Assembly (NCBI RefSeq): GCF_000143415.4
Contig: NW_003314320.1
Span: forward strand, 1,005,231-1,069,230
Direction: 5' to 3'
DNA length: 64,000 bases
Origin: Selaginella moellendorffii
Lineage: Eukaryota > Plantae > Lycopodiophyta
In this document: positions 2,006 to 18,083 of the stretch, in pieces
How the letters are laid out: each line of letters opens with the position of its first letter
How positions within the stretch are numbered: the first letter of the stretch is position 1
The notes under the pieces: generated by a model
The model's input: the letters and a program-made list of their open reading frames with translations, nothing else
The model's database searches: none
Told to the model about the DNA's origin: nothing
Translations under genes and position numbers: made by a program

Positions 2006-2641
2006 CTACGAAAGTTCTAAGATTTCTCTTGCCAGATTCGCTCTCGCCTCTCGCTCAAACCCGGCGTGGAAGAAATCCGTCCAGAAGAGGCGCTCTCGCT
2101 CCAGAAATCGCTTGAGCACGCCGGCTCTCTTCTCGCGATACACGCTCTCGGGAACCCACGAGTACTCGCTCCGGATGCCCTCCTTGTACGCGTCGTATTC
2201 CTCCTTCCCGCGTCCCAGGATGGACAGATCGATGTCCACCACCAGCCTCTCCGCCTGATCGCCAGCTCCAGTGTGGTCCACCGTCGCCAGGATCATCCTC
2301 TCAATCCTCTCCCGCGCGCTCGCCTCCATCCCTCGCGACAAGTCCACGAACAGCGCCGCGCTCTCGGCCTCGTTGCTGCTCGATTTGGGGTCGTAGATCG
2401 CGTCGTGGAACCAGAGTGCCACGGCAACCTCGTCGAGCTGAGCACCCGTGAGTGCTGCTAAATCGGAGCTGCCGTCCTGGCGGAAATCGGCCAGCCGAGC
2501 CAAGCAATCGTGTATGTGATTCAAGCCGTGATACTTTCGAGCCGGATCCGAGTAGAGTTTCTCGAGAGTCCCATGCACGCTGCGAGCCTGCTGCTCATCC
2601 TGCCCGCTTACCCTCGTCCAAAGCGCACAGAAGTCCGCCAT
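2006..2641 (-). CDS. Intronless HD-superfamily metal-dependent phosphohydrolase (COG4339-like), 211 aa
   Basis: Motifs YSDPARKYHGLNHI, ALWFHDAIYDP, NEAESA, DIDLSILG, IRSEYSWVP and ARANLAREI. Clean ATG-TAG ORF, GC-rich, with a TATA-like element about 30-35 nt upstream. Confidence 0.88.
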   Translation of the reverse strand: MADFCALWTRVSGQDEQQARSVHGTLEKLYSDPARKYHGLNHIHDCLARLADFRQDGSSDLAALTGAQLDEVAVALWFHDAIYDPKSSSNEAESAALFVDLSRGMEASARERIERMILATVDHTGAGDQAERLVVDIDLSILGRGKEEYDAYKEGIRSEYSWVPESVYREKRAGVLKRFLERERLFWTDFFHAGFEREARANLAREILELS

Positions 2642-2999
2642 AGCCGGAGCCCTAGAACCCTTTTTGCGCCTTTATATTAACTAGCAAGGAATCCAGCTCC
2701 GCTGGAATAGATAGGACATCTAGGTGACATGAATCCTAAAGAATTAGTTGTTTGTTTTCATCATCCAGTAGTGATGATGTATATTTTTCAAATTGTTTGT
2801 CTGAAATTCATAATGTCATTTTAGTGTAGAGATTGATAATTATACCTTGGAGATCATCAATATCCACAAATACTTTTTATGACAATGGAACATTGTCTTT
2901 GTATATACCCTTTCTTTTATTGGTAACAAAAGTAATATAAGCAGATGGTTTCTCAAATCCCATATTGTTGCAATTATTATCACTATATAGGAAGTTATT

Positions 3000-5900
3000 A
3001 CAGAAATTTAAAATTATAGAAAGGATTCTAATCAAAATCTTTTATGTATAACTTGCAAGATGGCAGGGTCAGTAAGGAATCTCTAGTATTCTTTCATGGT
3101 CTAAATGTTTCTTTCTTCAGATCCTCAAGGAACTTCAAGCGGAAGGTGTTCCGGATTATTTGACTCCTCATAAAGTAAGTTCCTGAATGTTCTTTCCTTG
3201 CTGCTCTACAGTTACCTAGCATGCTAGGTGAAAGTCTGCAAGAATTCACCAGCAACCATCCAGCCTTGAGCATGCTGCTACCAACTCTAAAGCCATATAC
3301 AGCTGGCCAGCTTCTATCTTTGTATGATCACTGGGTCATGGTGCAAGGATTTATCTGGGGAATCAACTATAGATACATTTAATATATACAAATTCATACA
3401 TATACTTCTTTGATCAATGAGGTGTGAACTTGGCAATGTAAACTTGGTTAAACCTTGGTTAAGGAGATTGCCATTTCCTTGGCTCACAATCCATCTTGAC
3501 CATTCTTTTTCTTTTGGGTTTACTTGCATGTATGGAATTTATTAGCTCAATTTTCAACTTTTGAAGAAATTCTTCTTGATCTCGTAGGATCCCTTTATAA
3601 GGTCAACATTAGCCTCCCTAGCAATTATCCATTAAAGCCTCTCAAGATAATGTGGAAAGGAGGAAGAATTCAAAGATCTTATCTCTCATTGGAAAATGTA
3701 GGTGGTGTTTAAAACGTGAATTTATTGCTGCAACATTCATCCTAGTGGACAGATCTTCTTGAAAACTCTCAAGGAGAATTAAAGTCCAGCTCTTACCATT
3801 TCCAAACTTTTGTTTCAATTTGTGCATTGCTGGGTGAGCCAGATCCTTGTGATTTTTCTCTTTGTTTTTCTTGAACTTATTTCCTTGTAGTTGATCCTTT
3901 GGTGGGAAGTATAACCTGTGAATATTTGTCCAAAATGTTAGTAGCATCTGACCATGTTGTGATTGACCGGGGGCCAAATCTTCTTGGACATGTGAGAAAC
4001 AAATCGAACTTTGTGGACAGCTCCATGGCCTTGTAGTCATGTAGCAAGCTCTTGGGCTTCTCATGCTGTATAAGCTGCAAGGCAAGGTCCATCTTTGCAT
4101 TCATCACCAGCTTCTCCACTTCAGGGACTCAGTTGTAAGCAGCAATGGTGATCTTCAATTCTTCTCCAGACAGTCTTTTTGAGTAGTTGATCTGATTGTG
4201 CCACCTTCATCAAGAACATCAACTTAAACTCAAGAAAGTTCCTTAGAGAAGACAAAAAAAAAAAAAAAACCTTAGCACTCAAGCTCTAGGCAAGAGCTCT
4301 CAATGACACGTTGCAAGCTTTGCTATGGCAGTTATGACAAAAAATAGCAGCCGGGACTGGACCGGGATGGCAGAAGTTTTATGCCTGGATGTTTGTGAAG
4401 ATTAGACACAACATAAACAGTGAGAAACTTCGATTACCATAAGAAGAGGTTTTTGTAGAGAACCAACTCTAGAGTTTCAAAGAGCTCTGTTACACCATCC
4501 TTGAAACAAGTACCACCACCCCCATGGTCTCCAACCACTCAGCATAGTTGCAAAGGAAGCTCAGTCTAGTAAATGTAATAGAAGTTTAACACTCAAACAT
4601 TGTAAAATCCATCTTACTTTACTGTCACTTGTTTGAGGTTGACTGGTAATGGGCTTCTGCAATGTTTTTACTTCTTTTGGGATAACAACTTCAAATAGAT
4701 AAGAAACGCTTACCTTCAAAAGAGCAATGAATTGAGGAGATTTCTTGAAGAAAGTGTGCACAAACTGAGAACACGTTTGTTGGACCTAATTTAAGACATG
4801 AGTCAGCTTATGAGTAAACTAATCTTGCTTACCTCGATTGAAAATGCCTTATCCGGAAACATGGCATTGATTCTGAAGAAGACCATAGGTAAAAGAGTGC
4901 AGAGTAGTGCTAAACATACAAAGAGCAGCGGATTAAATGCAAAGGTTTGGAACTTACAATCGCTCATATCTTGCAATGCAACGTCGAAATAGACTTGCAA
5001 AAGCTGCGGGATAAATTTTAGAGCATGTACCCCATTGCTACTTCCAATGTAGCCTTCATTCCAGGATACAACCAATGATGTTCCTGCAAGATGGACCTTT
5101 GTAACCTTAAAAGCGATATAGTCACTTCTTGTTAATGCTAAGCCTTCATTTTCATCTTTCAAGAGGTCTGAAAACAGATCATCTGCTTCGTAATATAAGC
5201 TTCTTCCAGAGCCTTCTTTGCTAGAATTGTTGCCCCCACCAATGAAAGTTCCCGTGTAAGTCAATGCTCGAAGTGCCTAAAAAAAGATGCCTCGAGATAA
5301 AAAAATCACAAACGTTAATGAGCATATCACCTCAAGTGCTGGGTTATTTAGAATGTTCCCCATGTTTCCGTGCAAAGATCCAGTGCATTGTTCTAGACTC
5401 TGACCAAAACTGCATAAAAGCTTCACATGCTTCAACATCAGAAATCGAGTCATAGCTCGGAAATACTCACTTGGCAGATACAGAAGAGCCAAGAACAGCT
5501 GCAAAATTGACAACTGCAAAACTCATAAACTTAGCCATCATCTTCTTGAAGCCAATTGTCATGTATGCTTGACGGTGGCAGTGCTTGGCTTTTGTTTGAA
5601 TTATCAGAGAGCTTCAAGAAACTTAATCTCCAATGTGTATGACTGTAATACATTCCAAGCAAGGTTGTCAGTAATCTAGAGAAGAAGAAAAGAGAATACA
5701 GATGTTTGCCGGGGAGCTAAAAGCATCAAAAATAGAAAACTCACCTCTTCAGTCACTGCCACTTGGCTCACTATTCTCAACACTGAGAACTTGCCAGTGG
5801 ATAGATGGACTCGCTGAGGTTAAGCCTATGCAAGTCAACCAACGTAGCTTGGCCAGTGACTCTAGAATGGGATCCAGCTTGTTGTCACTGAGCCATTGCA

Positions 5901-7345
5901 CATGAAAATGCATTCAGTTTGGCTACAAACAATATGTGAAAGCTTTTTACCTCAAACTTAAGAGTGCCATACCATTGTTTGGCATGAAGAACTGGAAGAA
6001 ATCAGCTTGACTGAGGAAGACAATGTTCAGTCTGCAGCAAACTTGACAAGATGGTGTAGAGTGAGCTGCTTCCGTTAGAGGTAGTGCTGAGCTTGGTCCT
6101 TGAGGACTGCATGAACTCTAACGCAGCAATCGTCCAAGGGACTATTGTCTTGCATTTGCACAAAAGGCAGGCACGGGACAAAAACATGTAATTTCCATGG
6201 CAGCTTTAGTTTTAAATATAAATTTCACTACCTTTGTTGTCAACTTCCATGTCACAAGAACCATTTCTTAGGGTCTCATTTACCATGTCTAAAAGGAAAT
6301 GTTACAAGTAGGAAACTTTTTATTATTAATTTTTGTTTGGATACCTCTTACCCTTTTTGCTTTGCTCTTTTGTAATCTCTTCTAGTCCCACTTCTTCTCT
6401 GCTTTTATAATCTACAGGAATCATTTTACACACCTTTGTAAAGCATTTCAAATTTATAATAGGCATCTGGGCTGTAAATCTCACCTGAAACTTCTTTCCG
6501 AGGGATTCTCAATGATGTAAATGCAACCTGCGTGTTTCCTGGCTCTCACCATTTTCCAAAGAGGAAGTCATTTCGTTCTGAAACCATGTAACTATAAAGA
6601 TAACCCTAACCAACTTTTATCTTGCAATACTTTACTTTGTCACAAATATCTTAAATCATTTTCCTTTGTTACATTGGGCAATAAGATATTATTCAGCAAG
6701 CCAGGTTGTGCTGCAGCACGGATTGCATGTGTTCTTTAGCCGTGATGTACCTGCAAAGCTCAAGAGCTCACTCATTATTAAAAAGTTATGAAGTCATGCT
6801 CTGTCCAAGTTCTCTCACCTTTAAATAACGGTTGAGCGGCATTGTGAACTATGATTAGATCATTCTATGGGCTTTTGTTTGTTTGTGAAGCATTCATCTG
6901 TATGCAAACTCGGGATGCAAGCACCTGAAAAGATTGGATTTTCAATTAGTTTCAGATGATGGAAAGCCAAGTTTACATTGCCGAGTTCACACCCCATTAT
7001 TGAAGGAGTTGATTCCCCAGATAAATCCTTGCACCATGACCCAGTGCTCATACAATGCTAGAAGCTGGTCAACTGTACATGGCTTTAGAGTTGGTAGCAA
7101 CATGCTCAAGACTGGACGATTGCTGGTGAATTCTTACAGACTTTCACCTAACATGCTAGATAACCGTAGAGCAGCAAGGAAAGAACATTCAAGAAGCCTT
7201 TCAAGATCCTACTCTTTATTTTGTAGGAAATTCAGCACTTGGCTCTCCGAATTTGCAGCATGCCAGGACTGCATTGCAATGTGTTGGGATTTCTCCTATC
7301 CAAGATGTGTGCAAGTATGCACAGATTTTGAGGAGATTTAGAAGG
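3000..7345. pseudogene. Decayed multi-exon gene remnant(s) of unknown identity, including an internal inverted duplicate (about 3180-3450 vs about 6960-7200)
   Basis: Exon-like segments bounded by GT/AG, interrupted by stops. The reverse complement of 3180-3450 aligns with 6960-7200 (PSLHC[Q/R]VHT..KE; GFRVGS.MLK). Confidence 0.4.
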
Positions 7346-7559
7346 TAGTAGGTAGACAATGCTTGATTCTTATTATAATGAGGCTTATAACATTAACTTT
7401 GCTAAACAATAGACTATGGCCGGTTTAGTAAAGGGATGATAAAACGTGTATGGTTGTAAAACTCAGTTCTCATGAGATTCTTACAACTTGCTTCTGAAAG
7501 TCTTCATGTTTTGCCTTTGTGCTTCGCAAATCTTCCTCAGCTTGCTTGAGCTGTACATA

Positions 7560-8900
7560 TATCTTCTCGACACATACCTGGTTTACTAGGGTGAGAACAA
7601 CATAAGGGTCACCAATCATGAAGTCCCTCACTGTAAGGTTTATGGCTTTTATTAGACGCACTCGAATCAATCCAACAAATCCTTGCAGACCTTGCAGTTA
7701 AAATTTTTACCTCTAGAATTGAAGCATTAAACAAACCAGAGCAGAAGAATCTTCTTGCCTTGAAATAATGTCAATTCTCGACAAGAGGAAGCCAAACGCA
7801 TAGATGGTTTTACGAATTCTTGTCTTTCATACTTGCTTCTGAGAAAACATTGATTGTTGAAAAATAAATATAGAAAACAGTTTCGCATCTCTTGAACCTT
7901 ACAAATTCTAATTGCTCTTGATTGGATGATTCCGGCATGGGTCTTTTGCCAGGATTTCGGAACAAAGGCCTCGTATGCAGCATTTGCAGCTGCATTGCCA
8001 CCAATAAACAGCATAAGCTCAACCCCTTCGTCTGTCCAGTTGTTGGAATTTATGGACATAAACTGTTGAAAAAGGACATAAAATTGGGAAGAGAGATTAT
8101 TTACATTTACCTTTGATACAGAAGCTCCCATGCTTCAATGAACAGCATAGCATTTGTCACAAATTATAACTCCATGTTTTTAGAGCTGGAGAAACAACAG
8201 AAGATGCAGCAAGATGGAAATGAAAATGACTTATGCCCATTGGGGACCCTACAAGCTGCAATCCGCACAGAATTGGTTGTCTGGTTGCAAGATAAATGTC
8301 TGAAATTTAGTCGTGCTTCTCTCCATTTGCTAAGGTATCAAAGATCCACTCCTGAAAAACAAAGATCGGTGGACAGACCTTCTAGCAAAAAAAAGAAGAA
8401 TAAAAGAAAAAGCATTGCATGGAAAACTTTACCTTTAACCAAAGGAAATTCCGAGTCGATGAGCTTAACCTTTACTCCAATCCTGCCAATATGCTCTGAG
8501 ACACATAGATACACTGCAAAAAAAGAGCATTCTCAACTCAGAGGGAAAAGAAAGAACTAGGACCAACCTACCAAGACGTTAAACCATCACCAAAGCCTAC
8601 CAATTCGAGGATAACAATCCTGGTGATAATAGAGAATGCATACTGCAACCAAAAAAAAGATGATGACGTTCCACTTGGAATTTATGGACATAAACTGTTG
8701 AAAAAGGACATAAACTTGGGAAGAGAGTTTATTTTCATTTACCTTTGATACAGAAGCTCCCAGCATTTGTCACAAATTATAACTCCATGTTTGTAGAGCT
8801 GGAGAAACAATAGAAGATGCAGCAAGATGGAAATGAAAATGACTTACGCCCATTGGGGACCCTACAAGCTGCAATCCGCACAGAACTGGTTGTCTAGTTC
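7560..8900 (-). pseudogene. ArfGAP-C2 (AGD11/12/13-like) pseudogene with a partial tandem duplication (8670-8900 copies 8044-8283)
   Basis: PDNQFCADCSL*GPQWA (stop next to the Zn finger), WTDEGVELMLFIGGNAAANAAYEAFVP, SKYERQEF, and the C2 start IRVRLIKAINLTVRDFMIGDPYVVLTL. Confidence 0.85.
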
Positions 8901-9213
8901 CAAGACAGTAAAGGAAAGATTCATGAGCACAAGGTATATAATGTAAGGACCAATGCAATCATGCAGCGAACCTCATGGTGTGCAGCCACGGTGATAAGCT
9001 CTCCTGGAAAAATGCATTGAGGTTTACCCTATAAAAAAACCCTCAACTGTTTTTTTTGCCACGTGTTTTTAATCTCCACCATTAAGCTTGAAAAGAATCT
9101 TGATTGAATATGTCACCCTTGCTCTTTTAAATATAGAAGGATGATTTTTGTATTTTCCACAAGTAACCAGAAGTCAAATTTGGAAGTGAAAAGTACACTT
9201 CCAGCTCTCCTAT

Positions 9214-11159
9214 CTATCTATCATTAAACGAGATACGTCCTCTCCAATTCTTGAGGCGCACCACCTCCTCTCCTCTTTGGCCAGTTACGGTGACACTTGC
9301 TATGCGCTCGCTGGGACGAAAGTTGACGGACATAAAAACGACCGAGTCACTAACAGGAACCACAGTATGCTGTTGTTCATTAGGCCTGTCCATGCAGAAG
9401 TTGATGATGAAAACCTGTGCTGAATGCTGATCATGGTAAAGAAGCGCCCTCGTCACGTGCTCCGTTATCTGTCTCATGGTACCGTTCGCAACAAGCTCCA
9501 CTGCAAACTTGGAGTTGGGACCGTCGCAAAATAGAGAGTCACAAGCAACTCAGACCACCTCTGATCTGGCACAATCTCCTCCTTGACTTCAGGTAGAATT
9601 GTCACTGGAATGCAAGGATAAGCACGTTTCAGGATGGCCTTCATCCTGCACAGGAAGAGGAACTGTTGCGCGTATTTGGACGGACCTGCTCCTCTAGCTC
9701 TTAAGCTCTCGGGCCTACACATAACTTCTCCGTCCAGAGTCTTGATAGCCTGAAGAAGGAGCCACACGCGGTCCAGTCGAGTAGCACAAGGAGGTGCATC
9801 CACGTCGTCGCAGAAGACGGTGCATCTACGGAGCATAGCAGTCCGAAGAAGAGGCGTTGAAATGCCTACATAATACCTTCCTGCCTCAGTTTCCTCATCA
9901 TCAGCTGTAATCACAGATGCTGCGAGCACCCCGTGTGCAATAAAATCGCGTAGTTGCACCAGCGTCTCGGGTCCGCAATATAGACCAGGAGTTTCCAGGT
10001 ACCGGGTCAGCAGCTTACATGCCTCGGCATCTTGCTCCTGTTTCCGAATGAAAGCAAGAATCCTGTTGTACGTAGCCTGTCCGAATATGTAAGTTCCCAA
10101 ACGATACGACTCTGCTCGCCGGAGCCAGCGTCTGAACGTCCAGAGCTCCTCCTGAACAAGGTAAGCCAGGCAAGTGCCTGTAAGCCCCTTGTGACCACCA
10201 GTCCACTGTATTATCGACACTGCAATGCTCTCCACCTCGATGGCCACACTTGGACGATCCGCTGCTGCTTGGTGTAACAGTTCCCTCACATGTTCCAGAG
10301 TGAACCTTGAGGATGCCAAGACATGGTCGTGCGGAAAGGGAGTCAGCCGACTTGGAGTAGAACTTGGCATATGCGTGTCTGTCCTTACTGCATCTGGAAC
10401 ACGCTTGTTGTATCGTGCTTCAAGAAGATCCTTTACAGTCTCCACCCCAACAAGCAGAAAGCCATGCAAGTTGTACGCATCCTTGTCGCTCTTGATGCTT
10501 CTGATGGTGGCAAAGAACTCGTCCACGATGTCCGACGATATGTCCAGCAGAGAATCTGCCTCGTCGAGGACGACAGTCACCAGCGTCGGCAGCTTGCTCC
10601 TTGTGAAGAGCGACTTGAAGACGAGAGATGTACATGGCACCTGCTGCTTGGGGAAGAGAGCAGGACACTTCAAGGTGAGGCTGTCGCAGATATAGCCCCA
10701 AAAGTCATGGCTGCTCCAACTCATCCTCGCACCCTCCAGTCCATCTAGGTAGACCACAGTCGCTTTGGACGTTAACATGAGCTCCCTCCGAGCTGCCAGC
10801 ACCATTGTCGACTTTCCACTCTGTCGAGGGCCACACAACGCGCAGTTCTTGCCCTGCGCCAGGTCGGATACCAGGTCGTCCACGTCCGGGGTGATATAGT
10901 AATGCGACTCGGGATCGACTGCATGCCCAGCTACAAACCGTCTCTTTGGAAGTGACTCGGTCCTAACCCGAACGCTGTAATCGACACCGGCAGCAAGCTT
11001 GGAGTCCGGCAGAATTGCCTCCCCTGCCTTGGATTCCAGCAACAGTAGATCAGCGCTCGTTTCTGTCTCCCTCGAGATATGACCCAGCGCCTCCTCCGCA
11101 GTCATGCCTGCTGAGAAAGCCCACCACTTTTGCGCGCCTTGCACACACGCAGCTTCCAT
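9214..11159 (-). CDS. Intronless CR/Crinkler-like protein, family B: Ubl-like header + STAND/AAA-like NTPase + PD-(D/E)xK nuclease, with one frameshift near 9550 (recent pseudogene or sequence error)
   Basis: RFVAGHAVDPESHYYI; Walker A CGPRQSGKST; Walker B VVLDEAD; WTGGHKGL (STAND GxP-like). The nuclease region ILPEVKE continues in a shifted frame as CDSLFCDGPNSKFAVELVANGT..ITEHVTRALLYH (ORF 9214-9501). First ATG at 11159. Confidence 0.75.
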
Positions 11160-11399
11160 TTCTCCTCGACCAACCCACCGCCTTTTTGATACCCTAAATT
11201 CTGTGCTCAATTGTTGCTCTCAAATCCTCGAGAATTGCCTCTAGCCTCGTTTTTCATAAGGATTTTTGACGCTGAAAGCGTGTGCCGACGACGCTTCTCT
11301 TCCCGCCCGCCTTTCTGTGCTTGGCTGCGTTGCTGTGAATGATCGAGCAGCCGGGTGGGATAGATTTGAGGTAAAACGACGCTGCAAGAGCCTCCAAGA

Positions 11400-12990
11400 C
11401 CCAGCAGTTCATTGAACAAGAGCTCTTGGCAAATGGAAACGAGAGAGAACCTGATAATCGAGTTTGTGGACGTCGAAGACACTTTTGAGCGTATGGGCGT
11501 GGTAAGACTTGAAAGCGTCTGCAGCCAAGCGACGCATGGTTTGGACCTCGAGTAGCTGAGTTTCCTGCAAAACAGTGAGAACAAGAATGGAAAGCGGATG
11601 AAAAAGGAACAAGCAGATTGGACATGAATGTTGAGCAACTTCGAAGTTCCATGGGAACTTTAAGCAGATGGAATAGATCAAAACTGGCAAGGCAAGAAAT
11701 ATAGAGGAAAGAAAAGCCATACGTTAAGGTCACGAAGGAAATCAAGCTCCTGGGGCAGCAGAAACAATACAGCCTGGCAACGGGCATCCTCTCCGCGAGC
11801 GGTCCGACCAACTCGGTGAATATACCTGTGAAGAAAGAAGGCAAGCTTTCATCAGCAAAAACAAGGAAAATAGGCCAACCTTAGGATCAGAAGGCTGGTC
11901 GTACTGGATAATCCTGCCGGTGCAAGAACTCAGAAAACCATTGCCACAATCCCACTCTTCCATAACATATTGCAAAAACAATGCTGCAGGAATGTCCAGA
12001 ACTCGGGCCACAACATCGGTACAGAGGAGGAGCCCAGATTCCGCTGCACAAAACTACGTAAACCTCGTCGACTGCTTCATCTTCCCGTGAATACTCAGGC
12101 ACTCCAAGTTTAACAGGCGAAACAGTTCGAAGTGGAACTTGATGGACTTACAAAAAGAGAAGAAGACCATCACCTGGAACGCTTGTTCTTAAGTTCCGAG
12201 CAACTAGAGATGTCTGTTTTCTTTGCTTTTCACCTTCTTTTTCTTGTTCTTCTACAGGAATGTGATGAGAAGCAAGAGCCGCTTCTCGGTGGGCACCACA
12301 CAGTAGCCTTGCTCCAGGCCTTATACAGTAGACTAAATCCACAATCAGCTCAAACCTGACAGAGTTTTGCTGGTTATGTTGCTGCATAAGGCAGATCGAC
12401 AAACTGTGCTGTTTTCTGCAACTCAAACAAAGAAGGCGAGCTTAAAATTTTTTCGCTTCTCCTTATGCTGCCTCCAAGCCTGGCAATCTGTTCAGGCATG
12501 GAAAAGGATTCGCATCGCTTACAAAACATTTGCTATGCTTACCGCAGGTTTCTCCTTATACGCGTTTTCGGTGATTAATAGGTGGAAGATCGTGCAAAAC
12601 TGACGCTCAAGGATCCAGTCTATATCGAGGTCGCATCCAATCAGGTAGGAGAACTAGAACTGCCTGAATTTTTTTAGACTTCACACATTGCCTCATTTCC
12701 TCCTCAAATCCGATCTCAAGCAGCCGGTCCGCTTCGTCGATCATCAAGTACTGATGAAAACACTGCGCAAAGGAATAGAAACTTCAAACCATGTATAAAA
12801 GAATCACCTTCAAGTTGTGATAGATCCATCCTCCAAGTCCACTGTCAGCAGTGCTCCTGAGATGATCCAGGAGCCTTCCAGGAGTAGCAACGAGGAGATT
12901 CACTCCTTCGGCCTCGGCTTTACGATTCGAGCTTCCGATGATCACCATATACGTTTGGGTGTGCGCTGACATAAGTTTGCTTGCAACTAG
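11400..12990 (-). pseudogene. DEAD-box helicase (HAS1/DDX18, RH27/RH51-like) pseudogene with an internally inverted segment
   Basis: Minus strand: [93 protein letters not shown]. Plus strand (about 12375-12645): DRQTVLFSATQTKK/VEDRAKL..PVYIEV. Stops and frameshifts present. Confidence 0.9.
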
Positions 12991-14099
12991 ACGTATCACG
13001 AGCTCGGGATCACGCTGCCACCGGAGGTGAATCGCAAAGCGAGCAGCAGGCTGGCATCAATGCTCGAGGACGGGAAAGACATTGTCTTGGTGATCAGCTT
13101 GCAAGCGATCACGCTGGTGGAGACCCGGATCGTGGATGGGTTCGAAGGTGGCCAGAGCCAACGAGAATGGGCATCGCATGTCTACTCTGGGGATGATCTC
13201 CGCAACTTCACCCCCGCTCGCTGACACAAGACTGTAGACAGTAGACTTTACTGCCATGGGAGCACAGAACGGGGTTGGGAAAGCTGGCGCATGCGGGTAA
13301 TGGAAGTCGTACCTGTCGAGACATCGTCAAGATCAGGAGATAGCAATCTTCGCGCTCTTCCCCTCCCGAATCTAGTCCTGGTTCGCTCCGTCAGGCTGAA
13401 GCACTGCAGTCTGAGCACGTCAACTTCCAAGCCTTCCAGATGAAGAGTACGAAGCAAGGGTGGAAATTGCTGGAAATTGCTAGGGGTGCTGGCTGCCACT
13501 CCAAGTTGAGGGAGGGCGGAAAGGTGGTGAACGCGCTCCAGTGGAGGCTGGTTTTTCTTCAGCCGTTGTACATTGACGCTGCTTGGGAATGTCGGGAAAT
13601 CTTCCCAGAGAAAACATCACCAGTGGCCTCGATGGTCATAGAGAACATCATGTGTATTATAAGGTTAGCCTCTTTGTTTTCCTCTCTCCCTGATCTAGAG
13701 CTTATTTGCACAATCCTAGAGATTATCTCCTCGCGTCAATCTAGAAGAAAAGTGTAGTCATTCCAGACGGGTGGGTGGATTCAAGGCAGAACAAGCCATG
13801 GCGAAGCAAGCCACAAAGTACGAAGCTCTCCTCTGTATGTTCTCGAACTTCCAGGGCGTTACAGACTTGGTATTCGGTCCAGAACTTGTCTCGCTAGCTA
13901 CCACTAACTCGAGCTTCAGACCTTGGAGAAACATCGCCCCTGTCTACAAATATAATCCTTCCTGTGTCCTCAGTATTGATTATATAGTTTGGGTCCATAG
14001 AATAGATCTTGTCTTGCGCCCGGGTCGAAGATATGAGTAGCTCGGAAACTTGGCGCCATTTAGAATATTCTAAAAAGTTAAACGAGCGCGAAACAGGAC

Positions 14100-14122: not shown

Positions 14123-18083
<3,961 letters not shown>

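Follow-up and report, generated by a model that had tools for sequence, protein, structure and literature searches.

The gene considered here lies on the minus strand of a 64,000-nucleotide stretch of Selaginella moellendorffii DNA (contig NW_003314320.1, positions 1,005,231 to 1,069,230; this whole stretch is called the window below), and the closest described systems are the Crinkler-RHS-type (CR) proteins. The CR class was reported from land plants and free-living eukaryotes in 2016 (Zhang, Burroughs, Vidal, Iyer and Aravind), as summarised in PMC5289972. In the module model given in the same summary, the restriction endonuclease (REase) is the toxic component and the nucleoside triphosphatase (NTPase) regulates it. 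A ubiquitin-like fold has been published for Crinkler headers (PMC5289972, PMC6131194), and the fungus Rhizophagus irregularis has a large repertoire of CRNs, some of which are secreted symbiosis effectors (PMC6131194). A full-text literature search, whose reach did not include the original of Zhang et al. 2016, returned no paper on Crinkler-like genes of lycophytes or ferns. We read the locus, with a probability of about 0.75, as the GL377624.1-haplotype allele of a lycophyte/fern family of Crinkler-type genes, an allele decaying into a pseudogene while the other haplotype holds an intact one. The CR class is known, non-pathogenic land plants included, and this is not a new kind of system; with land-plant NTPase-REase genes already in the literature, the picture of the class is unchanged. 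What is added here is the allele pair, a ubiquitin-like header that is not of the Crinkler family, the kinship with Mucoromycota and the detection of a faulty annotation. The family, now labelled 'hypothetical protein' or wrongly 'ATP-dependent RNA helicase', thereby receives a tested domain assignment, and the natural pair of alleles, one intact and one broken, gives a simple genetic way to ask what a Crinkler-type nuclease gene does in a plant that is not a pathogen.

How does the plant family compare with these systems? A member is an intronless gene for a protein of about 650 residues, built from a ubiquitin-like header, an AAA_22/AAA_35 P-loop NTPase with a helical linker, and a domain of the REase fold. 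This architecture is probably the NTPase, helix-turn-helix (HTH) and REase module of the CR proteins, and the order from header through P-loop NTPase and linker to REase-fold domain is the same. A sequence-only reading of the window had proposed such a header/NTPase/REase gene, and the proposal is borne out by the presence of NTPase and REase-fold domain in one polypeptide and by fungal proteins with Pfam Crinkler headers that are homologous to it from the NTPase to the REase. The closest non-plant relatives are CRN-like proteins of Mucoromycota, with E-values from 1e-85 to 1e-50 (Rhizophagus irregularis P0024 and P0081; Paraglomus occultum P0162 and P0029; Haplosporangium P0041; Mortierella P0031; Modicella P0028; Jimgerdemannia P0032). 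They have the same motifs and share a 99% clade with the plant family, but are 26-30% identical to it, form a clade of their own, and carry headers that are Crinkler-type, coiled-coil or absent. Unlike the CR effectors, the plant proteins have, by inspection, neither a signal peptide nor an LxLFLAK-like motif; the N-terminus is polar (MEAACVQGAQKWW; MA.KR.. in paralogues), and nothing suggests secretion or delivery. The plant gene is a resident, syntenic one.

The likeness to Crinkler headers lies in the predicted fold. An AlphaFold model of the header, made with 12 homologues, has a predicted local distance difference test score (pLDDT) of 83 and the order beta-beta-alpha-beta-beta. In a VIA-align search this model matches the Raf Ras-binding domain with Z 10.5, and the parkin Ubl, Fubi, ubiquitin and SUMO with Z about 9. 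Foldseek returns 57 matches at E<=1e-3, and of the 50 listed nearly all are ubiquitin-like, SUMO or ubiquitin, with template modelling (TM) scores of 0.66-0.74. As modelled, the header is a ubiquitin-like beta-grasp, a fold it has in common with the CR headers, and the sequence-only claim of a header of about 70 residues of the Crinkler kind stands at the level of fold.

The NTPase can be placed from its motifs and profile matches. Pfam AAA_22 matches the window protein with E 3.2e-7 and 31.1 bits (cut-off 27), and it matches 10 of the 11 family rows, while nSTAND3, AAA_16 and ATPase_2 match weakly; the STAND-type Pfam matches, to nSTAND3 and nSTAND1, are weak only. Among 49 relatives the Lys of Walker A and the Asp and Glu of Walker B are invariant or nearly so. 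The Lys of the GHKG motif is aligned with a Pro in 9 of 23 remote relatives, which makes the motif GxP-like. AAA_35 (PF14516) matches neither the window protein at E<=1 nor any of the 11 family rows; remoter relatives come closer, with P0111 at 36.9 bits above the cut-off of 27 and P0025 (24.7) and P0060 (21.6) below it. A protein language model places the ORF (open reading frame) that bears the NTPase nearest to a Mucoromycota AAA_35+Crinkler cluster, with a score of 0.97. Judged by such sequence comparisons, the NTPase is of the AAA_22/AAA_35 (STAND-like) kind. The same logic of an NTPase followed by a C-terminal domain of PD-(D/E)xK fold is found in bacterial AAA_35 proteins with PDDEXK_3 or DUF8371 domains, which reach a language-model score of 0.94-0.95. 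These bacterial proteins are shorter (450-520 residues) and have no ubiquitin-like header. The linker that follows the NTPase, with the blocks ATYNRILAF, LRDFIAHGVL and ISTPLLRTAMLRR conserved in the family alignment A1, is a predicted HTH by analogy with the NTPase+HTH+REase architecture described in PMC5289972.

For the C-terminal domain we modelled the domain of the intact allele, with nine homologues and the window tail. The model (pLDDT 84, predicted TM score 0.82) has an alpha-beta-beta-beta-alpha-beta core and three further strands, and its DSSP order is H43-61, E68-77, E84-95, E98-106, H110-127, E130-138. In an exhaustive VIA search the best matches are the small subunit of R.BspD6I (Z 7.0), BamHI (6.8) and NucC (6.4), followed by BstYI, McrC, Can2, OkrAI, BglII, CinB and Cap4, and most of the best 50 are REases or nucleases related to them. 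The best structural matches, to BamHI/BglII/BstYI-like REases and to NucC, Can2 and Cap4, cover 108-144 aligned residues at 8-13% sequence identity, and their Z of 5-7 is middling. In an atlas search the model reaches TM 0.66 to the Mucoromycota AAA_35+Crinkler cluster and 0.53-0.55 to the bacterial AAA_35+PDDEXK_3/DUF8371 clusters. The call of the fold rests on VIA-align and the atlas search because Foldseek against the PDB is weak, giving no match at E<=1e-3 (best the Bax1 nuclease at 3.9e-3; Cas4 and NotI come below it). A profile search of PDB sequences found no solved relative, its best match being an unrelated EF1-alpha-like protein at E 0.04, and Pfam on the tail alone gave nothing useful (DUF6027, E 0.16). 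It is the consistency of the match list that counts, and on the model the C-terminal domain is of the restriction-endonuclease fold, as had been suggested from the letters.

Does this domain keep the residues of a nuclease? Its second half holds strand 2 with the Asp (CDSLF), strand 3 with the Glu (KFAVELVANG), helix 2 (EHVTRALLYH), strand 4 (HSAQVFIINF) and a C-terminal beta extension. Of 49 relatives, 42 retain the helix-1 Glu, 44 the helix-2 His and 44 the helix-2 Tyr. The PD-(D/E)xK-like pair of Asp and Glu that the sequence-only reading had pointed out is also conserved, the strand-2 Asp in 42 and the strand-3 Glu in 44, and the family signature can be written E...E...D...ExV...HxxRAxxY. 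The conserved His, Arg/Lys and Tyr on helix 2 might substitute for the catalytic Lys, to judge from the alignment. In BamHI-like enzymes, too, the third catalytic position is occupied by a residue other than Lys. Catalytic competence of the domain is plausible from these residues. The window allele has a Lys for the helix-1 Glu, and its frame breaks before the Asp.

We turn to the reading frames of the window allele. The gene spans 9214-11210 (-), and most of it is a 578-codon intronless ORF at 9474-11210 (-), whose first ATG is at 11159 (MEAACVQ); the stretch 5' of this ATG is probably non-coding. Each of the motifs quoted in the sequence-only reading, RRFVAGHAVDPESHYYI, Walker A, Walker B and GHKG, is found in this one ORF. 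A 109-codon tail follows in a second frame, at 9217-9543 (-), with its stop codon at 9214-9216. Its translation holds CDSLFCDGPNSKFAVELVANG..EHVTRALLYH.. and reads in full order CDSLF.CDGPNSKFAVELVANG..EHVTRALLYH..HSAQVFIINF before the stop. The frame changes between WSEL (9546-9557) and CDSLF (9529-9543), so that the frameshift is inside the nuclease domain, as had been claimed, though not directly after ILPEVKE (9579-9599), from which it is 11 codons further on. In the nuclease core, strand 1 lies on one side of the break and strand 2, which bears the Asp, on the other, and the codon replaced at the break stands before the strand of the catalytic Asp. Homologues match far above chance (E = 0 in Selaginella, about 1e-149 in Adiantum), and all the full-length ones run uninterrupted across 9544-9545. 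The claim that the two ORFs belong together is thus confirmed by every full-length homologue and by the other haplotype. Throughout the analysis the two window pieces were treated separately and never fused across the break.

Over 18,170 nt the window agrees at every position with scaffold GL377624.1 of the Selaginella moellendorffii assembly GCA_000143415.2 (100.000% identity). A second scaffold, GL377658.1 (L001), is colinear with it by blastn, with flanks that are 95.7-98.6% identical and a gene region that is 92.4% identical, and it shares the neighbouring genes with the window (RNA polymerase subunit 2, alanyl-tRNA synthetase, helicase, a 211-residue ORF and STT3). From this colinearity we take GL377658.1 to be the other haplotype of the locus, with SELMODRAFT_427665 (P0001) as the syntenic allele. 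This allele is intact, a single open frame of 688 codons. Between the two alleles the coding sequence is 97.4% identical, with 51 differences, the synonymous divergence (dS) is 0.047, and the ratio of nonsynonymous to synonymous divergence (dN/dS) is 0.38 before the break and 0.64, on just 10 differences, after it; the tail at 9217-9543 (-) is 94% identical to the intact allele. The window allele also carries E535K, in which the Lys codon 9675-9677 replaces the conserved helix-1 Glu of the PSEY motif. In the blastn comparison of GL377658.1 with the window, a 6.46-kb segment at 2679-9143 is present only in the window haplotype and starts about 70 nt past the stop. Contrary to the sequence-only reading, the frameshift is therefore not the only obvious lesion. 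The decaying-allele reading rests on the frame break, the Lys for the helix-1 Glu and the 6.5-kb 3' insertion together. The window allele would yield a product of header, NTPase and nuclease stump and would be heading toward a pseudogene, while the other haplotype retains an intact copy.

The intact protein would be intracellular and non-secreted, with NTP binding and hydrolysis gating a metal-dependent nuclease that acts on nucleic acid, and it may be used in some genetic conflict or defence. We propose an intracellular NTP-gated nuclease because of the polar N-terminus lacking a secretion signal and because of the published module model. The nucleotide-binding residues and the acidic nuclease residues have been conserved over a long time, from ferns to fungi.

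Several observations weigh against the reading of a decaying allele of a Crinkler-type nuclease gene. The plant header is unlike the headers of the CR proteins in sequence: neither the window header nor the fern headers match Pfam Crinkler (PF20147) at E<=10, and when the plant headers, as an alignment, are compared by hhalign with fungal headers of the Crinkler type, the probability is 0.3%; by these comparisons it is not a sequence member of the Crinkler family. The position of the Lys in the classical (D/E)xK motif is occupied by Val, Leu or Gln throughout the family and the VIA scores are middling by the tool's own standard, and nuclease activity is for these two reasons not assured. No experiment or expression pattern ties the family to defence, and PADLOC finds nothing significant, its one match being mad8 with a not meaningful E of 0.0015-0.008 over the P-loop. 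The overall dN/dS of 0.42 between the alleles gives no clear relaxation of selection. The broken form is known only from the reference assembly, which is the source of the window itself, and the X1 contig that spans the break and the X5 contig that abuts it both differ from the window.

The last point bears on the question "is the frameshift real?" The alternative is that the reference scaffold is wrong here through base-calling or assembly, with both haplotypes of the sequenced plant then intact. The gene model SELMODRAFT_423009 (P0017) is not independent support for the break, because the window is the reference assembly itself. In run X1 (DNA contigs, 2024) the sole contig over the break has one base more than the window and a substitution beside it, and its reading resembles that of the intact allele; in run X5 the contig that reaches the break ceases to fit exactly there, has one other mismatch and is therefore not the window form. 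Across the sequencing runs covered, no independent read or contig has the window form across the break. The reference assembly is low-coverage Sanger sequence split over two haplotypes, and the break lies in a short G+C-rich run of the kind where compressions occur. Against an error stands, in the first place, the complexity of the difference, which is a missing base together with an adjacent substitution. Further, X1 comes from a different genotype, a mosaic of the two reference haplotypes with three alleles at 10865, and says nothing on the window haplotype. X5 is very probably RNA, because GT..AG joints are spliced in a neighbouring gene. At 10339-10444 and 10802-11136 its contigs are identical to the window, while the other haplotype has 2 differences from the first and 9 differences and a 3-nt indel from the second; the window haplotype itself is thus real and present in an independent data set. 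It appears to be transcribed, though at low depth (3-4, where the neighbour has 5-6), and the raw RNA runs X13 and X14 have about 3 reads each over 5.9 kb at 12% sampling. The window allele also has other damaging differences, the Glu-to-Lys change and the 3' insertion. Of the inspection of reads, other haplotype and RNA that the sequence-only reading had suggested, the other haplotype thus turned out intact, while the window form is found in no independent contig. We conclude that the frameshift is probably a real allele and that an error is the unlikely, though by no means negligible, explanation; whether or not the frameshift is real, the plant has at least one intact copy.

The family is neither small nor confined to Selaginella. 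Full-length relatives of 630-700 residues include several S. moellendorffii paralogues, proteins of Adiantum nelumboides and A. capillus-veneris, and sequences from Logan assemblies; their mean column identity is 47%, and all are continuous over the break. At least 10 Selaginella gene models belong to this clade, with allelic pairs among them, and Selaginella also has at least 4 loci in two more distant clades. What had been presented as an oddity in a land-plant genome is therefore a multi-copy, old family in a lycophyte that is found in Adiantum as well. Apart from the two alleles, the nearest full-length relative is P0003, which has 58-59% identity and comes from positions 1-2359 of Logan contig L003 (SRR15179107), a 2.36-kb contig with short flanks that looks like a transcript.

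A word-index protein search with alignment reached Selaginella and Adiantum only, so an exhaustive profile search was used, which gave 3211 proteins at E<=1e-3. The best non-plant matches are all from Mucoromycota sensu lato and run from the NTPase through the nuclease (Paraglomus occultum at 1e-85 and 3e-62, Rhizophagus irregularis at 1e-70, then Modicella, Mortierella, Haplosporangium and Jimgerdemannia). The fungal relatives have in common the motifs GxRQSGK(S/T), DEA(D/S), GHKGL, PSEY, LPE(V/A)KE, RLDxL and FELV. Pfam Crinkler PF20147 (cut-off 24.6) is found in Rhizophagus P0081 with 49.6 bits and in Haplosporangium P0041 with 50.2, and two more fungal relatives are just under the cut-off; the headers of other relatives are SAM-like, coiled-coil or missing. 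Such mixed headers are the modular pattern described for the CR class. The green alga Enallax, the amoebozoan Nolandella and the transcriptome of a marine protist contribute further members. Trees were built from 49 and from 88 sequences, and in them a clade supported at 99% unites the lycophyte/fern clade (100%), the second Selaginella clade, a lone Selaginella protein, Enallax and the Mucoromycota (96%). Inside it is a polytomy, with plants not nested in fungi and fungi not nested in plants, and because of this no direction of plant-fungus transfer can be read. Plant monophyly costs 1.5 log-likelihood units and is not rejected (approximately unbiased (AU) test, p 0.47). The lineages of the Mucoromycota CRN clade (arbuscular-mycorrhizal fungi, Endogonales, Mortierella) are all associates of plant roots. 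One may imagine, as a tentative and rather unlikely joint reading, that the kinship goes back to a gene that passed long ago between early vascular plants and the fungi living in symbiosis with them, that plants kept the module inside the cell as an NTP-gated nuclease serving defence or genome conflict, and that the intact and broken alleles reflect the cost of an active nuclease.

Could the gene be the cargo or enzyme of an active, transposon-like selfish element and not a resident host gene? CR NTPase+REase modules are held to descend from prokaryotic transposon proteins (PMC5289972), the family is multi-copy in Selaginella, the gene has no introns, and repeat-rich DNA lies directly 3' of it in the window haplotype. 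The gene occupies the same syntenic position in both haplotypes, however, between the helicase and the genes for the 211-residue ORF and STT3, and the closest paralogue is just 65-79% identical, which speaks against a recent burst. No terminal repeats stand around the gene, the large repeats being confined to the separate 3' insertion, and a six-frame scan with the family profile finds a single match in the 64 kb, with none in 1-2700 or in the corresponding part of the other haplotype. In synteny, paralogue identity, bracketing repeats and the search for a second family match there is no sign of recent mobility, and the family is conserved between lycophytes and ferns. We consider an active element improbable, and hold to the reading of a resident gene with one decaying allele.

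To see in the NTPase an ordinary NB-ARC or housekeeping AAA+ domain of plants, with a superficial likeness to Crinklers, has very little to recommend it. Pfam gives the window protein generic AAA families only, and UniRef names its relatives 'ORC1/DEAH AAA+ ATPase' or 'ATP-dependent RNA helicase'; yet NB-ARC (PF00931) is matched by no family member in any Pfam scan, including those at E<=1 and E<=0.1, the fungal homology reaches from the NTPase through the linker into the nuclease (about positions 85-640 of the 664 in the profile), and the helicase name stems from a gene model that is a fusion, the fungal bearers of the name having no DEAD domain. The NTPase groups with the AAA_22/AAA_35-type NTPases of fungal Crinkler-header proteins, in line with what the sequence-only reading had proposed. 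With the plant NLR immune receptors the family shares a likeness of logic only, that of a nucleotide-switch NTPase coupled to an effector domain, and its GHKG aligns with the GxP-like motif typical of STAND-type NTPases; it differs from them in having no NB-ARC homology, no leucine-rich or other sensor repeat, and a nuclease output. Contamination by an arbuscular-mycorrhizal fungus or a very recent transfer from fungus to plant, which the nearest non-plant relatives (Glomeromycota, Mortierellomycota, Endogonales) might bring to mind, is scarcely credible given the separate plant and fungal clades (100% and 96% support) at just 26-30% identity, the orthologous clades in Adiantum ferns and a plant monophyly that the AU test does not reject, and contamination is ruled out by the plant genes around the locus (RNA polymerase subunit, alanyl-tRNA synthetase, STT3) on two haplotype scaffolds.

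Table 1. Positions in the window of the parts of the Crinkler-like gene and of the neighbouring helicase exons.
Feature	Position	Strand	Remarks
Header	10944..11159	-	ORF residues 18-89, from first ATG; predicted ubiquitin-like beta-grasp
P-loop NTPase core	10182..10943	-	RRFVAG through Walker A, Walker B and LLVGVET to GHKG
RRFVAGHAVDPESHYYI	10893-10943	-	in 578-codon ORF
Walker A GPRQSGKST	10806-10832	-	in 578-codon ORF
Walker B VVLDEAD	10554-10574	-	in 578-codon ORF
LLVGVET block	10437-10457	-	in NTPase core
WTGGHKGL (GHKG motif)	10182-10205	-	in 578-codon ORF
Helical linker	9804..10181	-	ATYNRILAF, LRDFIAHGVL, ISTPLLRTAMLRR; winged-helix-like sequence features
Nuclease, first half	9546..9803	-	in NTPase frame; N-terminal helices, helix 1, strand 1
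Core helix 1 PSKYAQQF	9660-9683	-	Lys (9675-9677) where family has conserved Glu
Strand 1 ILPEVKE	9579-9599	-	in nuclease first half
Break	9544-9545	-	2 bases here; whole codon (Arg, or Arg/His) in other haplotype and all homologues
Nuclease, second half	9217..9543	-	shifted frame; translation
DEAD-box helicase exons	11448-13639	-	tblastn of P0001 and P0017; upstream, same strand

The name 'ATP-dependent RNA helicase' can be traced to the neighbouring gene. The window ORF is 99-100% identical to SELMODRAFT_423009, and the gene is the 3' part of that model, which is a fusion with the upstream DEAD-box helicase and in which an invented intron bypasses the stop. Both SELMODRAFT_423009 and SELMODRAFT_427665 join the helicase exons at 11448-13639 to the Crinkler-like gene; no other full-length family member has the helicase part, which is thus outside the family architecture. 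UniRef gives both fused models the helicase name. Mortierella KAF9372619.1 and Haplosporangium KAF9197886.1 bear the same name, yet have no DEAD domain by Pfam, and this looks like an annotation error that has spread from the fused model to fungal homologues. In the helicase gene itself, an exon with DEAD-box motif III (..RQTVLFSATQTKK..) lies on the plus strand at 12367-12603 (+), the exons with the GKT, PTRELA and DEAD motifs are on the minus strand at 12679-12987 (-), and the SAT motif is missing from the helicase gene models of both haplotypes. Raw RNA reads on the helicase are very few. This neighbour of the Crinkler-like gene may be rearranged or a pseudogene.

On the other side, the insertion at 2679-9143 is rich in repeats. 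Inverted arms at 3180-3447 and 6967-7195, about 270 nt long and 85-92% complementary, enclose a gene model with a C-terminal TPR fragment of AP5Z1 (about 3737-5562), and a tandem duplication of about 620 bp lies at 8043-8905. In run X1, words from 8900-9293 occur at a depth of 500-790, compared with about 25-45 elsewhere, or 10-20 times the local value. The insertion may be a foldback or Pack-type element with a host gene fragment. Beyond it, the 211-residue ORF at 2006-2641 (-) is kept in both haplotypes and is only 130 nt past the Crinkler-like gene in the other one; it has the look of an HD-phosphohydrolase (..HGLNHIHD.., ..WFHDAIYDP..), with no Pfam match at E<=0.1. Upstream, X5 contigs at 14146-14730 (+) show two short GT..AG introns, at 14252-14296 and 14532-14586, and because of these introns an expressed plus-strand gene is present there, within the annotated minus-strand neighbourhood of the alanyl-tRNA synthetase.

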